Assembly: GCF_000009045.1 (NCBI RefSeq)
Contig: NC_000964.3
Coordinates: forward strand, 1,426,001-1,490,000
DNA: 64,000 nt
Direction of reading: 5' to 3'
DNA from: Bacillus subtilis subsp. subtilis str. 168
GTDB taxonomy: Bacteria > Bacillota > Bacilli > Bacillales > Bacillaceae
Notes under the pieces: generated by a model
Told to the model about the DNA's origin: nothing
The model's input: the letters and a program-made list of their open reading frames with translations, nothing else
The model's database searches: none
Shown: positions 52,072 to 57,471 of the stretch, piece by piece
How the letters are laid out: the number at the start of each line of letters is the position of its first letter
Numbering within the stretch: position 1 is the stretch's first letter
Made by a program: the position numbers and the translations under genes

Positions 52072-52836
52072 ATGGAAAAAAAGGCGGTAATTATTACCGG
52101 CGGGTCAAGCGGCATGGGAAAAGCGATGGCAAAAAAACAGGCTGAATTAGGGTGGCACGTTATGGTGACAGGGAGGAACCATGAGGCACTTGAGGAAACA
52201 AAAAAAGAAATTCAGACCTTTGAGGGACAGGTCGCTTGTTTTCAAATGGATGTCCGTTCCGATTCCGCCGCTTCAGACATGATTAAAGAAGCGGTAAAAG
52301 CCTTTGGCCGGCTTGACGCGCTGATTAACAACGCGGCCGGAAACTTTATTTGTCCGGCAGAAAAGCTGACGCCCAATGGATGGAAAGCCGTTATTGAGAT
52401 TGTTTTAAACGGCACATTTTTTTGCAGCCAAGCAGCGGCAAGGCATTGGATTGACCAGAAGCAGCAGGGTGTCATTTTAAATATGGCAGCCACGTACGCT
52501 TGGGGAGCGGGAGCGGGGGTCGTTCATTCCGCTGCAGCCAAAGCGGGGGTATTGTCATTGACAAGAACGCTGGCCGTTGAATGGGGGAGCAAATACGGCA
52601 TTCGTACAAACGCGATAGCCCCCGGACCGATTGAACGAACAGGCGGTGCGGAGAAGCTATTTGAATCGGAAAAAGCGATGGCCCGCACGATGAACAGTGT
52701 GCCGCTCGGCCGATTGGGCACACCGGAGGAAATCGCCGCTTTGGCAGCGTTTTTGCTTTCTGATGAAGCATCCTATATAAACGGGGATTGTATCACAATG
52801 GACGGGGGGCAATGGCTGAATCCTTATCCGTTTTAA
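52072..52836 (+). CDS. fadH: 2,4-dienoyl-CoA reductase (SDR)
   Basis: TGGSSGMG, NNAAGNF, HSAAAKAG. Confidence 0.92.
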   Translation: MEKKAVIITGGSSGMGKAMAKKQAELGWHVMVTGRNHEALEETKKEIQTFEGQVACFQMDVRSDSAASDMIKEAVKAFGRLDALINNAAGNFICPAEKLTPNGWKAVIEIVLNGTFFCSQAAARHWIDQKQQGVILNMAATYAWGAGAGVVHSAAAKAGVLSLTRTLAVEWGSKYGIRTNAIAPGPIERTGGAEKLFESEKAMARTMNSVPLGRLGTPEEIAALAAFLLSDEASYINGDCITMDGGQWLNPYPF

Positions 52837-53136
52837 TCTGAATATTTATAAGTGAATATTTAAGTTATTAAGAACTTTTATGTTCGAATGTAATACCTCC
52901 ACAATTAACCTTCTTCCTATCCAATTTGATAACACATAGAGCTTTATTTGTTTATGAGGTGTTGTGTCATACGTAAGCCACCTAATATATGAAAGGTATA
53001 TTTTAAAAGGGGAGACGAAATATGAAGAACTTAGATTTCAAATAAAACATTCATATAATTACTTCGTTAACTAAAAAGAGAAATTATAAGAATGAAAGGT
53101 TTCAAGGTTACATCAGATTGGGAGGAAGGTAATATA

Positions 53137-54867
53137 ATGGACGAGATGGTATTATTAACTCAGGAATGGCTCAATGAAACGTACAAAGGAAAAAGTGGCT
53201 ACAATTCCATTGAGGAAAATGGGAAAACTGGCTGGAAAACAATGTATGCATTAACTAGAGCATTACAACTAGAATTGGGAATTACACAGACTTCCGACAG
53301 TTTTGGTCCTACAACTTTAAGAAAGCTTAAAGAATTAGGCCCGATTTCTACGTCAACTAATTCAAAAAAAAATATTGTGAAAATTATTCAAGGTGCTCTT
53401 TATTGTAAAGGTTATGGTCCAGGTGGATTAACGGGTACATTTGGTCAGGGAACGAAAGAGGCGATAGCAGAAATGCAATTGCATATGGGGCTTTCTAAAA
53501 CAGACGGTGTAGTAACGCCTAAGGTGTTTAAAGCTTTATTAAACATGGACTCTTATATCCTTTTAAATGGGGCGTCAGAGAAAGTTCGTTCAATACAGCA
53601 ATGGCTAAATAATAAATATTACAATAGAGAGAATTTCTACTTTATGCCCTGTGATGGCCTGTATTCAAGGGATACTCAAAAGTCTCTTGTTTATGCAATA
53701 CAGTACGAGGAAGGGTTAAGTGATAGTATAGCTAATGGGAATTTTGGACCAACTACTCAAAGATTGATTCCTGTATTAAGAATTGGAGAAACAGATGAAA
53801 AAAACAGTTTTATTCATTTATTTCAAGCTGCTCTAATCTTTAATGGCTACAATGTTCCTTTTGATGGAGTATACTCTGAATCTGTAAGATCAAAAGTAAA
53901 GGCTTTTCAGTCTTTTGCAAAATTACAACAGAGTGGTACTGCCGACTTTCAAACATGGGCTTCACTTCTAGTAAGTACTGGAGACCCCAATCGAAAAGGA
54001 GTTGCTTGTGACTCAATTACTCAAATTACATCGGACAGGGCGGAGTCCCTTAAGAGGGCAGGTTATAAGATTGTAGGGCGGTATCTAACAAATGCGCCGG
54101 GGAGTACACTAAATAAAAAAATACAACCAGGTGAATTAGAAACTATCTTAAAATCAGGTTTAAATGTTTTTCCGATTTATCAAACCTATGGGGGAGCAAC
54201 AAATTATTTTAATAAAGAACAAGGAAAGAAAGATGCGTTTGCTGCTTATAAAGCAGCAAAAGAATACGGGTTTAAAAATAACACTGTAATATACTTTGCA
54301 GTAGATTATGATGCATATGGTAACGATTTAAACAACAATATTATTCCACACTTCGAAGGTATAAATGAAATAATGAACGGTTTTTTAGGTTCAACTTACA
54401 AAATTGGTATTTATGCCCCTAGGAATGTATGTACTATAGTTTCTAAAAAAGGTTTAGCATTTGCAAGTTTTGTAAGTGGTATGTCTACTGGCTTTAGCGG
54501 AAACTTAGGATATCCTTTGCCTTACAATTGGGCGTTTGACCAAATTTCAACAATTACTGTTGGAAATGGTTCTGGAATGATTGAAATTGATAATGATATT
54601 TGTTCAGGTTTGGATAATGGAGTTAATACCATAAATATAGTGCCTTCAGAGAATAAGAAGTTTTTTGATCAAATTGATGTTTTATATGAAACTGCTGAAA
54701 AATATGCTCAAATGCAAAGCGACTTAAATAATGGGGTAAAAAAAACACAATTAGCTAATGAGTTGGTTGCCCAGTATTTAAGAAAGGATGACTACAAAGG
54801 GTGGAAGTGGGTCCCTACCGCAGGCCAGATTGATCCTATTTATCGTGAATGGGCAGTAAAGCGCTAG
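53137..54867 (+). CDS. fadG: peptidoglycan-binding repeats + DUF1906-like glycoside hydrolase domain (truncated by frameshift)
   Basis: RBS GGAGG; repeated DGxxGxxT PG-binding units; GRYL, PIYQ, IYFAVDYD and GIY motifs (ykuG). Confidence 0.75.
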   Translation: MDEMVLLTQEWLNETYKGKSGYNSIEENGKTGWKTMYALTRALQLELGITQTSDSFGPTTLRKLKELGPISTSTNSKKNIVKIIQGALYCKGYGPGGLTGTFGQGTKEAIAEMQLHMGLSKTDGVVTPKVFKALLNMDSYILLNGASEKVRSIQQWLNNKYYNRENFYFMPCDGLYSRDTQKSLVYAIQYEEGLSDSIANGNFGPTTQRLIPVLRIGETDEKNSFIHLFQAALIFNGYNVPFDGVYSESVRSKVKAFQSFAKLQQSGTADFQTWASLLVSTGDPNRKGVACDSITQITSDRAESLKRAGYKIVGRYLTNAPGSTLNKKIQPGELETILKSGLNVFPIYQTYGGATNYFNKEQGKKDAFAAYKAAKEYGFKNNTVIYFAVDYDAYGNDLNNNIIPHFEGINEIMNGFLGSTYKIGIYAPRNVCTIVSKKGLAFASFVSGMSTGFSGNLGYPLPYNWAFDQISTITVGNGSGMIEIDNDICSGLDNGVNTINIVPSENKKFFDQIDVLYETAEKYAQMQSDLNNGVKKTQLANELVAQYLRKDDYKGWKWVPTAGQIDPIYREWAVKR

Positions 54868-55451
54868 GGGAAGACCTAGTAAATGGAATTGTTGATCCTA
54901 TATCAAAAACTGTCATAGGAACGCAGCATCTTATGGCAACTTATAATGCCATTATTTATAGTGGTGGTTACTCTCAAACACTACGAGATTTTGCTGGTTG
55001 GACTGGAGATCTATTAACAACAATACAGGACATGAAATTACACGCTCAAGAATTTAATTCGCCTTATGATGCGGCTATGAAAATAATAGGTAATATGTAT
55101 CAATTTAGCCTAGATGATTTATTTAGTGATGTAGATGCAATTAATCTAGCGAATAAAACATCAGTTGGTGCTAATGCACAACCTCTAAATATCGCAATTA
55201 GAGATTATTATAGTAATAATGACTGTATGAATAGGTTCACTCAATTTGTAAATAATAGATTTGATGGTTCGTTAGACAAAATTTTCTCTGAAGCAGAGTA
55301 TTATTTAAATACAAACCTTGACCCAGTTGTTGTTCCAATTAGGTTAGCCTTTAAACGTGCTTTTGATGTTGAGGATTATAGTGAAGAGATTGGAAAAATA
55401 ACAGCACAAGCATTTAGAGATGTTATCGAGAAAAAAATGATATCTGAATAA
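54864..55451 (+). pseudogene. ykzU: C-terminal continuation of ykuG in the -1 frame
   Basis: Frame overlaps the ykuG stop (AAG CGC TAG versus GCG CTA GGG); no clear RBS; contains QHLMAT...GWTGDL. Confidence 0.65.
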
Positions 55452-55456
55452 ACTGC

Positions 55457-55495
55457 AAAACAAGCGAACGTTAAAACTGGTCGTTCGCTTGTTTT
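55457..55495. terminator. bidirectional terminator between ykzU and ykuH
   Basis: AAAACAAGCGAACG...CGTTCGCTTGTTTT 14-bp inverted repeat. Confidence 0.85.
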
Positions 55496-55546
55496 ATTTT
55501 CTATTTAAATTTATGATATAATTTTTAAAGATTAAGGAGTGATTCA

Positions 55547-56095
55547 TTGAAGAAATTGTTAAAAAAGTTAGTTGTATTATTTTTAAGCAGTTTAGTTATC
55601 ATCTTTAATGTTTGGTACTTTATTATTTGTGCTTTTTCCCCAGAGTATTATCAAAATACAAATCTTACTTCTAATGAAATAATAAGATTTGAAAAACTAT
55701 ACCACATAGATTTTCCTGATGAAACAAAATTTATTAAAGCTAGAGAGTATTTGGCTGGGCCCGGAGGAGATACGTCAGCTGTATTATATGTGTCTCTGCC
55801 AACCAAGCGGGTAGAAAAAGTTTTATCTGATTACACGTATATGAAAATAAACTATACTGACAATGTCGGTTCAATGTATGGAGTTGACGTTTCAAAGAGT
55901 GTCGCCGGTTTAACAACTCTTACATTTGGCACTTACGATAAAAAAGGAACTTTCTATAATATGAAACATGATGATGATTGGATGTATAAAGGCACTGACT
56001 GGAATCTTTACTTTTGGACAGCTGCTAGTTATAATGCTGTTATTTTTGTATTTGTTTTGGTTATTGTGAAACAAATGAATAAAATTCTTAATTAA
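55547..56095 (+). CDS. ykuH: membrane protein (N- and C-terminal TM, probable extracellular domain), unknown function
   Basis: RBS AAGGAG, TTG start; extended -10 TGaTATAAT at 55514-55522. Confidence 0.8.
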   Translation: MKKLLKKLVVLFLSSLVIIFNVWYFIICAFSPEYYQNTNLTSNEIIRFEKLYHIDFPDETKFIKAREYLAGPGGDTSAVLYVSLPTKRVEKVLSDYTYMKINYTDNVGSMYGVDVSKSVAGLTTLTFGTYDKKGTFYNMKHDDDWMYKGTDWNLYFWTAASYNAVIFVFVLVIVKQMNKILN

Positions 56096-56247
56096 CCAGT
56101 ATGTAGATTGATAATCTCAAAAAAATTTTCCTCTTCTTTTAACATACTCCATACGACCTACTTTTCCATACTATGATTTTTTTGAAATTTGTGGTGTAGT
56201 TATAATTGTGCGTATAATCAGACAAAGATAGAGAAGCAGGTGATAAC

Positions 56248-57471
56248 ATGTTGGATCCACTTGATATTTTAACGAACATTGATGATGTCCTTCCATATTA
56301 CCAGGCGATTTTTAGTGCCGAGGAGCAGAAGGTTGTCGGATATGAGGTGCTTGGACGAATTTTGGCAGATTCAGAAATCCAAAGTCTCGGGCCCTTCTTT
56401 TTAGATGCGGGGATACCCGAAGAATATAAATTAGAGGTTGATAACAGAATTATCCGCCAGGCTCTTGACCGCTTTTTAGAGGCGGATTCTGATCTGCTGA
56501 TTTTTATGAATCAGGATGCCAATCTGCTGATGCTGGATCATGGTGAAAGCTTTCTGGAGCTTCTGAAAGAATATGAAGCGAAGGGAATCGAACTCCACCG
56601 TTTTGTGCTTGAAATTACAGAGCACAATTTTGAAGGGGATATTGAGCAGCTCTACCATATGCTTGCATACTATCGTACATACGGAATTAAAATCGCAGTT
56701 GACAACATCGGAAAAGAAAGCAGCAACTTGGACAGAATCGCGCTGCTCTCACCAGATCTGTTAAAAATCGATTTGCAGGCGCTGAAAGTGTCACAGCCGT
56801 CACCGTCATATGAGCATGTGCTGTACAGCATATCTTTATTAGCAAGAAAAATCGGTGCGGCGCTGCTGTATGAAGACATTGAGGCGAACTTCCAGCTTCA
56901 GTACGCCTGGAGAAACGGAGGCCGCTATTTTCAGGGCTATTACTTAGTGTCTCCATCTGAAACGTTTCTAGAGAGAGATGTATTGAAACAAAGACTTAAA
57001 ACTGAATTTCACCAATTTATCACACATGAGAAAAAGAAACTGGAGACCGTCTATGAGCACTCTGAACAGTTTTACAAACGAGTGCATCAGGCTGTGACCT
57101 CTTTGAGAAAAAACAATCTGTCTTCTGATGATGACTTTATTAAAAAGCTGGCGGAAGAGCTGACAGATTGCAGCTTCAGGATTTACATGTGTGATGAAGA
57201 AGGCGATCAGCTGACGGGAAATGTGTTTAAGCAAGATGGAGAATGGATTTATCAGCCGGAATATGCGGAAAAGAACTGGAGCTGGCGCCCTTATTTTCTG
57301 GAGAACATTATGAGAATGAGAAATCTCAGAAAAGGTTTTTTCAGTGATCTGTACAGTGATTTGGAAACAGGTGAAATGATCAGAACGTTTTCATATCCGA
57401 TGGATGATCAGATGTATTTATTTATAGACTTGCCTTATTCTTATTTATATGAGCAGGACGGACTGATTTAA
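56248..57471 (+). CDS. ykuI: EAL-domain c-di-GMP-binding protein
   Basis: GYEVLGR, LEITEH, IAVDNIG, FQGY; C-terminal PAS/Cache-like domain. Confidence 0.92.
   Translation: MLDPLDILTNIDDVLPYYQAIFSAEEQKVVGYEVLGRILADSEIQSLGPFFLDAGIPEEYKLEVDNRIIRQALDRFLEADSDLLIFMNQDANLLMLDHGESFLELLKEYEAKGIELHRFVLEITEHNFEGDIEQLYHMLAYYRTYGIKIAVDNIGKESSNLDRIALLSPDLLKIDLQALKVSQPSPSYEHVLYSISLLARKIGAALLYEDIEANFQLQYAWRNGGRYFQGYYLVSPSETFLERDVLKQRLKTEFHQFITHEKKKLETVYEHSEQFYKRVHQAVTSLRKNNLSSDDDFIKKLAEELTDCSFRIYMCDEEGDQLTGNVFKQDGEWIYQPEYAEKNWSWRPYFLENIMRMRNLRKGFFSDLYSDLETGEMIRTFSYPMDDQMYLFIDLPYSYLYEQDGLI

Follow-up and report, generated by a model that had tools for sequence, protein, structure and literature searches.

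A frameshifted gene with a TelC-like C-terminal domain, ykuG/ykzU (fadG), and the candidate immunity gene ykuH in Bacillus subtilis 168

What does the AT-rich segment between fadH and ykuI on the chromosome of Bacillus subtilis subsp. subtilis str. 168 encode? In the literature its first gene, ykuG or fadG, is treated only as the second gene of a FadR-repressed fadH-fadG operon (PMC5397183, PMC4525379). An earlier note on this DNA had instead read the ykuG/ykzU-ykuH segment as a possible cell-wall-attacking effector with a cognate immunity protein, mis-assigned to fatty-acid degradation. We analyzed the locus within a window of 64,000 nucleotides (nt; NC_000964.3 1426001-1490000), and all coordinates below are window positions. 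The genes lie in the order ykuD-ykuE-fadH-ykuG/ykzU-ykuH-ykuI, in agreement with the names in the earlier note. Our overall reading, at a probability of roughly 0.55, is that ykuG/ykzU is an antibacterial cell-envelope toxin gene, now broken, and that YkuH is its immunity protein.

Two open reading frames (ORFs) on the + strand, 53092/53137-54867 and 54849-55451, overlap in different frames. Alignment of the DNA with the intact genes of B. mojavensis and B. halotolerans located the break: a single nt is missing between 54854 and 54855, with a substitution beside it. The intact relatives encode 771 amino acids (aa), the length that the earlier note had estimated for a rejoined product. ykuG/ykzU is one gene of ~771 aa, inactivated by a 1-nt deletion. 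Intact 771-aa alleles are present in some strains labelled B. subtilis, and fragments in the same 90% cluster as the broken C-terminal ORF have been called on ~1000 or more contigs. Natural intact homologues were used for all analyses. The parts of the gene are as follows.

53137..53979, + strand: four helical wall-binding modules in the order A-B-A'-B' (A, residues 1-67; B, ~77-136; A', 148-215; B', ~222-281)
54046..54600, + strand: Rv2525c-like (DUF1906) TIM-barrel, glycoside-hydrolase-like (Pfam PF08924, E 1.8e-52)
54649..54867, + strand: opening portion of the TelC-like domain, read in the frame of ykuG as far as the premature TAG; the conserved scaffold ends at ...IEIDNxIxSGxDNG
54853..54856, + strand: frameshift site (alignment A2 with intact relatives)
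54849..55451, + strand: ykzU, remainder of the TelC-like (prok-TelC/lipocone) domain, in which the motifs H (TQHLMAT), AGWTGD, the Asp motif SLDDLFSDVDAINL, YY and NRF are kept

Two observations on such breaks may be added. The break falls at GTA AAG, and a -1 slip on A_AAG would yield ...WAVKALGEDLV, near the intact ...WADKALGEDLV (54849-54867). The type strain of B. halotolerans, ATCC 25096 (L016:6001-6300), has its own, different ykuG frameshift near codon 78 with an intact ykuH downstream, while other strains of that species carry the intact 771-aa gene.

Single-sequence searches with the 200-aa ykzU product returned no match in Pfam, NCBIfam or PDB and only a weak PHROG match. These searches gave nothing useful; a profile and a predicted fold were needed for its identification. 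The last 270 residues of the intact B. mojavensis protein (P0165) were aligned with 46 homologues drawn from an exhaustive HMMER search (332 representative clusters), giving an alignment of 47 sequences (A3). The AlphaFold2 (AF2) model of the B. mojavensis domain reached a predicted local distance difference test score (pLDDT) of 94.8 and was helical with a single hairpin, as in the TelC fold with its mostly alpha-helical lobes and one beta-hairpin. Foldseek ranked TelC (5ukh) first for this model, albeit weakly. The sequence profile independently hit TelC: hmmsearch against all PDB sequences returned 5ukh_A with an E-value of 3.5e-9 (39.8 bits, three colinear blocks), and the sole other row had an E-value of 0.51. 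Signature residues of the family are His94 (42/43 sequences), Asp157, Asp161 and Asp163 (46/47 each) and Arg196 (45/47), together with a GWxGD motif. The published description of prok-TelC domains names an active-site His, an Asp in an Asp-rich motif, a second Asp six residues on and an Arg from the C-terminal helical extension (PMC12419801). His94, Asp157 with Asp163 six residues further on, and Arg196 agree with this description. All signature residues are still present in the ykzU ORF of strain 168, and the product of 54649..54867 matches residues 1-76 of the intact domain with 91% identity. We conclude with high confidence that the C-terminal ~270 residues form a TelC-type lipocone domain, which gives an identity to the extra domain that the earlier note had noticed beyond the barrel.

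The N-terminal part is a wall-binding scaffold. The ATG of ykuG at 53137 is preceded by the ribosome-binding site (RBS) GGGAGGAAGG, and the protein begins MDEMVLLTQEW without a hydrophobic leader. Matches to related loci begin at query residue 1-2 in 81 of 82 cases, and at residue 81 in the broken B. halotolerans gene. This alignment from the first residues marks MDEMVLL... as the true N-terminus, and the protein lacks a signal peptide, in agreement with the first look at the sequence. Modules B and B' are PG_binding_1 domains (Pfam E 4.4e-32, two stretches; NCBIfam and PHROG stretches 65-136 and 222-281), and A is related to A' (31% identity, E 3e-9). Together, these two relationships define an array of four modules, A-B-A'-B'. 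The barrel that follows matches PF08924 with 178.8 bits against a gathering cut-off of 27.2 and covers profile positions 2-197 of 198; it has many invariant columns over 15 homologues from Bacillota and Actinomycetota (alignment A1). Peptidoglycan-binding repeats and a DUF1906-like barrel had both been predicted, and both were recovered here. No LXG domain was detected: in the N-terminal 576 aa and in the intact homologues, Pfam gave only PG_binding_1 and Rv2525c_GlyHyd-like.

The same scaffold carries different C-termini in other bacteria. A word search found >3154 homologues of ~720-800 aa, which belong to Bacillota and Actinomycetota. Over the N-terminal ~500 residues they share 45-65% identity, even between phyla, and conservation stops beyond ...IEIDNxIxSGRDNG at about residue 495 (alignment A1). 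Behind this point we found at least nine C-terminal types or clusters among 79 loci, including the TelC-like type, a Lipase_3/Mbeg1 type with GHSLGG, Ybfg_C and a dominant actinobacterial type. A constant N-terminus with alternative, unrelated C-termini is the anatomy of polymorphic toxins. The variable C-termini that the earlier note had suggested looking for in homologues do exist. TelC-type domains were present in 5 of 401 sampled Bacilli genomes. This sporadic and decaying distribution, seen also in the independent B. halotolerans frameshift and the AT-rich region, was counted in favour of the toxin reading. Most shorter TelC-like matches are fragments of the architecture of peptidoglycan-binding domains (PGBD), Rv2525c-like barrel and TelC; a few stand behind other N-termini (RicinB in P0214; unassigned in P0206, P0290 and P0283). 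The actinobacterial C-terminus was considered as a diverged TelC domain, and this was dropped (hhalign probability 0.1, no PDB match). The only lead for it is lysozyme-like, DUF1402/SLT by language-model features.

TelC (SIR_1489) of Streptococcus intermedius is an LXG toxin exported via type VII secretion (T7SS); it cuts lipid II at the undecaprenyl phosphoester and is toxic only outside the membrane (PMC5555719, PMC6193138). Ca-dependent cleavage of lipid II or undecaprenyl pyrophosphate (C55-PP) would be expected of a prok-TelC domain; a thin-layer and high-performance liquid chromatography assay for it is given in PMC5892711. Purified TelC added from outside was reported not to kill, presumably because it is blocked by the wall (PMC6193138). 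Immunity is provided by TipC, which neutralises TelC and whose N-terminal helix is a membrane anchor; the inhibitory part of the protein lies in the inner wall zone (PMC5555719, PMC6193138). In contrast to the LXG/T7SSb-exported TelC, YkuG has neither an LXG domain nor a WXG partner and carries a 500-aa scaffold of PGBD and Rv2525c-like barrel instead.

Proteins that combine PGBD, an Rv2525c-like barrel and a prok-TelC domain have been interpreted as potential conflict systems in a computational survey (Burroughs et al., eLife 2025, PMC12419801). Their domain architecture is identical to that of YkuG, and the actinobacterial partners reported there, a small multi-transmembrane protein and a secreted VanY-type peptidase, were also recovered at loci in our sample. 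Neither in that paper nor in its supplements is there mention of ykuG, ykzU, ykuH or ybfG; partners of the YkuH type, the frameshift in B. subtilis, orphaned ykuH and the scaffold with C-termini other than TelC are likewise not reported there. YkuG/ykzU is a degraded member of a potential conflict-system type already known from this 2025 survey; the TelC-like identity of its C-terminus is the main gain, and YkuH is a new candidate immunity family.

A second member of the scaffold family is found in the same genome. YbfG (732 aa; G000:C1:238819-243339, L013) is 51% identical to YkuG over residues 1-503 and shares the MxDEMVL start without a signal peptide. In contrast to ykuG, its gene is intact, and its C-terminus, Ybfg_C (PF21015 in related proteins), ends in hydrophobic segments and is not TelC-like. 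ybfG is followed by ybfF, an overlapping ORF for a membrane protein that is confined to close relatives; YbfF is polytopic and unrelated to YkuH. In a study of ybfG-ybfF-ybfE, loss of YbfF led to lysis with beta-lactams, and YbfF overexpression protected (bioRxiv 10.64898/2026.05.13.724699). As a parallel to YkuG-YkuH this lysis phenotype may be suggestive, ybfG dependence having lain outside that study. YbfG has also been found in B. amyloliquefaciens, both in the pellicle and in the cell-free fraction, where lysis was not excluded as the source.

From the domain identities, variable C-termini, frameshift, terminator and ykuH distribution observed here we infer a mechanism that would comprise enzymatic activity, toxicity, wall breaching and an interaction of YkuH with the toxin. 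The four peptidoglycan-binding-type modules and the barrel of an intact protein would bind, and perhaps cut through, the wall of a target cell. Passage through the wall would allow the TelC-like domain to reach lipid II; judged from its homology, the domain would cut lipid II (or undecaprenyl-PP) on the outside of the membrane. YkuH, anchored at both ends with a wall-facing domain, would act on the TelC-like domain as TipC acts on TelC, by neutralising it in the inner wall zone. In strain 168, ykuH would be left as an orphan immunity gene. Should the scaffold indeed breach walls, enzymes whose site of action lies beneath the Gram-positive wall would have in it a natural delivery module. Bacillus offers a tractable setting for the route of a TelC-type domain to the inner wall zone without a T7SS and for the roles of YkuH-type and three-transmembrane (3-TM) partners; it also bears on whether the beta-lactam phenotype of YbfF is an immunity phenotype.

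A wider proposal can be made, which we put forward tentatively and hold to be somewhat doubtful as a whole. The PGBD-Rv2525c scaffold may be the self-contained wall-binding and wall-breaching module of a large polymorphic family of bacteriolytic toxins in Bacillota and Actinomycetota, independent of T7SS and Sec. It would place its interchangeable warheads (TelC-like phosphatase, lipase, possibly a lysozyme/SLT-like domain, hydrophobic Ybfg_C) at or beneath the target wall, and lineage-restricted membrane proteins of the YkuH and YbfF kind would confer immunity. The beta-lactam hypersensitivity of ybfF would then be caused by unneutralised YbfG, and ykuH in 168 would be an orphan immunity gene directed against neighbours with intact alleles.

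For the immunity question, ykuH and the signals in front of it have to be described.

55457..55503, + strand: intrinsic terminator after ykzU (hairpin 55457-55495, -19.1 kcal/mol, z -4.65, followed by the U-run UUUUAUUUU)
55514..55522, + strand: extended -10 TGaTATAAT upstream of ykuH, read by eye from the sequence
55534-55539, + strand: AAGGAG, the RBS of ykuH, from sequence reading, with the TTG start at 55547
55547..56095, + strand: ykuH, 182 aa, candidate immunity protein, with a TTG start after the AAGGAG RBS

A terminator followed by a separately promoted membrane-protein gene had been proposed, and the hairpin and the extended -10 bear this out. A good -35 was lacking, and a two-hexamer promoter scan left TGaTATAAT unlisted. 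YkuH has hydrophobic N- and C-terminal helices on either side of a ~120-residue alpha/beta domain that is predicted to be extracellular; the secondary structure derives from an AF2 model of low confidence (pLDDT 60). No Pfam, NCBIfam or PHROG family matched the protein, and its atlas look-alikes all scored below 0.9, none with a family. By word search there are just seven 90% clusters, and every named one is from the B. subtilis group. Its likeness to TipC is one of topology only, a transmembrane anchor and an outside domain. In contrast to TipC with its N-terminal anchor, YkuH has two transmembrane helices and no detectable TipC similarity.

ykuH was found in 10 of 49 species of the genus; at least five species lack ykuG and have the arrangement fadH-ykuH-ykuI. 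In one of these, a 22-aa remnant of the ykuG C-terminus persists just upstream of ykuH, so here ykuG was lost and ykuH kept. The earlier note had called the cassette acquired; this was not shown, and the remnant points to loss in that species. In ykuG-less genomes the ratio of nonsynonymous to synonymous substitution rates (dN/dS) of ykuH was 0.26-0.33, compared with 0.03-0.07 for fadH and ykuI. At this ratio ykuH is more relaxed than its neighbours, yet still constrained. One genome (G020) has a syntenic orphan ykuH and, at a second locus, a YkuG-like gene followed by a YkuH-like gene; the C-terminus of the former is 44% identical, and the latter protein 36% identical. This second YkuH type occurs alone in two further species. 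YkuH-type partners were found only beside the two most similar C-termini, those of the B. subtilis group and of G020 (a small sample). Small 3-TM proteins are encoded after other TelC-type genes, in Terribacillus and B. tequilensis. Such patterns look like those of orphan and cognate immunity genes, which is circumstantial, and YkuH as the cognate immunity protein is plausible but unproven. Of the effector-immunity interpretation, the envelope-attacking effector and the alternative C-termini are supported; immunity by YkuH was not shown, and the complex prediction gave no answer.

Several results speak against the toxin-immunity reading. In TelC, the D401A variant serves as the inactive control (PMC5555719, PMC6193138). 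The position of D401 is Gly in B. subtilis, B. mojavensis and B. halotolerans and Asp in 23 of 43 members; this column lies three residues before the His, and the mapping uses an inferred SEQRES offset of 187 (14-aa tag, ranges). YkuG has neither a signal peptide nor an LXG domain, while TelC is toxic only outside the membrane. Within the TelC type we saw no recent C-terminal swaps; divergence is gradual, at 25-45% identity. Downstream genes across TelC-type loci do not belong to one family, and several loci have no obvious partner. The YkuH profile found nothing among PDB sequences (best row E 6.3), the presence there of the TipC2 structure described in PMC6193138 being unconfirmed. The YkuH model is poor, and complex prediction for YkuH's ectodomain and the TelC-like domain scored 0.00, an outcome that speaks neither for nor against binding. 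Finally, the actinobacterial scaffold stands in a conserved operon with a VanY-like peptidase that carries a Tat signal, which equally fits housekeeping wall remodelling.

The last point leads to the strongest competitor, which we nevertheless judge unlikely: that YkuG is a housekeeping or developmental wall-remodelling enzyme that acts on the wall of its own cell by trimming it, or serves to recycle lipid-linked precursors, for instance in sporulation, germination or hyphal growth, YkuH being unrelated or regulatory. At 44 of 82 loci (Actinomycetota, L030-L094) a ~234-aa protein is encoded downstream, ~300 nt away on the same strand, and the scanned examples have a Tat signal or weak similarity to Peptidase_M15_4 (VanY-like). 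This shared operon partner fits such a role, as do the 45-65% identity of the scaffold between Bacillota and Actinomycetota, the description of the YbfF phenotype as cell-wall homeostasis and the persistence of ykuH where ykuG is absent. A housekeeping enzyme is harder to reconcile with a TelC type found in so few Bacilli genomes (5/401), with repeated breakage and loss in close relatives without sign of replacement, with the AT-rich region and with interchangeable C-termini, a lipase among them. Moreover, among relatives of the C-terminal domain only one has been characterised, and it is a toxin. The VanY-like partner accompanies two different C-terminal types, and at nine loci a ~117-aa membrane protein follows immediately downstream.

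Quite improbable, in our estimate, is a prophage-derived lysis cassette in which YkuG would be an endolysin-like enzyme released via a holin-like YkuH. Like YkuG, phage endolysins combine wall-binding repeats with a barrel resembling glycoside hydrolase family 25 and typically have no signal peptide; phrog_15213 covers the full length (E 2.7e-154), and there are matches of single domains to several endolysin PHROGs. A homologue lies on one metagenomic phage contig, and the copy in G020 (L008:1798-2766) lies downstream of an Amidase_2-LysM-PG_binding_1 gene. In contrast to YkuG, however, endolysins lack an extra toxin-type C-terminal domain. Only 2 of 50,697 phage records matched the N-terminal part and none matched the C-terminal domain, so that relatives are near-absent from phage genomes, and the window shows no phage genes nearby, the neighbours being fadH upstream and ykuI downstream. 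The terminator between ykuG/ykzU and ykuH also disagrees with such a cassette. YkuH matches no holin family in Pfam or PHROG, and purifying selection on ykuH where ykuG is absent would be unexpected for a dedicated holin.

We likewise give little credence to YkuH as an export or release factor for YkuG rather than its inhibitor. YkuG has no recognisable export signal, and genes for small membrane proteins are found repeatedly downstream of family members, as this explanation would ask; yet genomes without any ykuG to export retain an intact ykuH, with dN/dS of ~0.3.

There remains the role that the name fadG implies, for which the upstream side of the locus is needed.

52072..52836, + strand: fadH, short-chain dehydrogenase/reductase-type, 2,4-dienoyl-CoA reductase-like (Pfam adh_short_C2, E 1.5e-55)
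52837..53136, + strand: AT-rich spacer of 300 nt separating fadH from ykuG; neither a convincing terminator nor a sigma-70-like promoter lies in it

The signal scan of the spacer found no terminator-like site and no promoter-like site on the + strand, only a weak AT hairpin after fadH (-10.8 kcal/mol, z -2.0). The earlier note's observation that no terminator is evident after fadH thus holds. The absence of both consensus signals from the gap fits the published FadR-repressed operon, of which fadH is the first gene (PMC5397183, PMC4525379). A true role in fatty-acid degradation, to which this operon and the missing terminator would point, is nonetheless hardly credible, since every domain points to the wall or lipid II and none to lipid catabolism, in close relatives ykuH comes directly after fadH without a ykuG, and the gene is broken in 168 with fragments of the broken form widespread on other contigs. 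Neither a beta-oxidation nor a lipid-catabolism domain was found in ykuG/ykzU with Pfam, NCBIfam or PHROGs. The suspicion of a mis-assignment was therefore well founded: the name fadG derives from operon membership, and under the toxin reading it would be corrected, in a model organism, to a broken envelope-toxin gene.

The composition of the segment sets it apart from its surroundings, as had been noted from spot counts. GC content is 0.28-0.38 over 52800-56200, compared with 0.42-0.53 in the flanking fadH and ykuI. Against three ykuG-less species (L097, L099 and L100; window 52072-57468), synonymous divergence was ~0.3-0.4 for fadH and ykuH and ~1.9-2.3 for the adjoining ykuI. This contrast suggests that a boundary of recombination or transfer lies between ykuH and ykuI.

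Some loci of the wider family deserve mention on their own. In genome G422 (L111:868-2600) a 420-aa protein carries a TelC-like domain after an unrelated N-terminus and is followed by a 98-aa 3-TM protein, which resembles the small proteins that accompany TelC-type genes in Terribacillus (L009) and B. tequilensis (L032). Two precomputed Pfam labels mark C-termini, PF27189 the TelC type and PF26363 the lipase type; neither was reported by the local Pfam scan. Ectobacillus panaciterrae (L019:678-7000) has two tandem scaffold genes of 751 aa and 747 aa on a 7.3-kb contig. In Desemzia sp. RIT 804 (L025, L026) two copies lie on one contig, and the flanking ORFs listed are the same for both; judged by eye, the flanks seem to include a prophage-type XRE/ImmA-like pair and a glucosaminidase-like gene.

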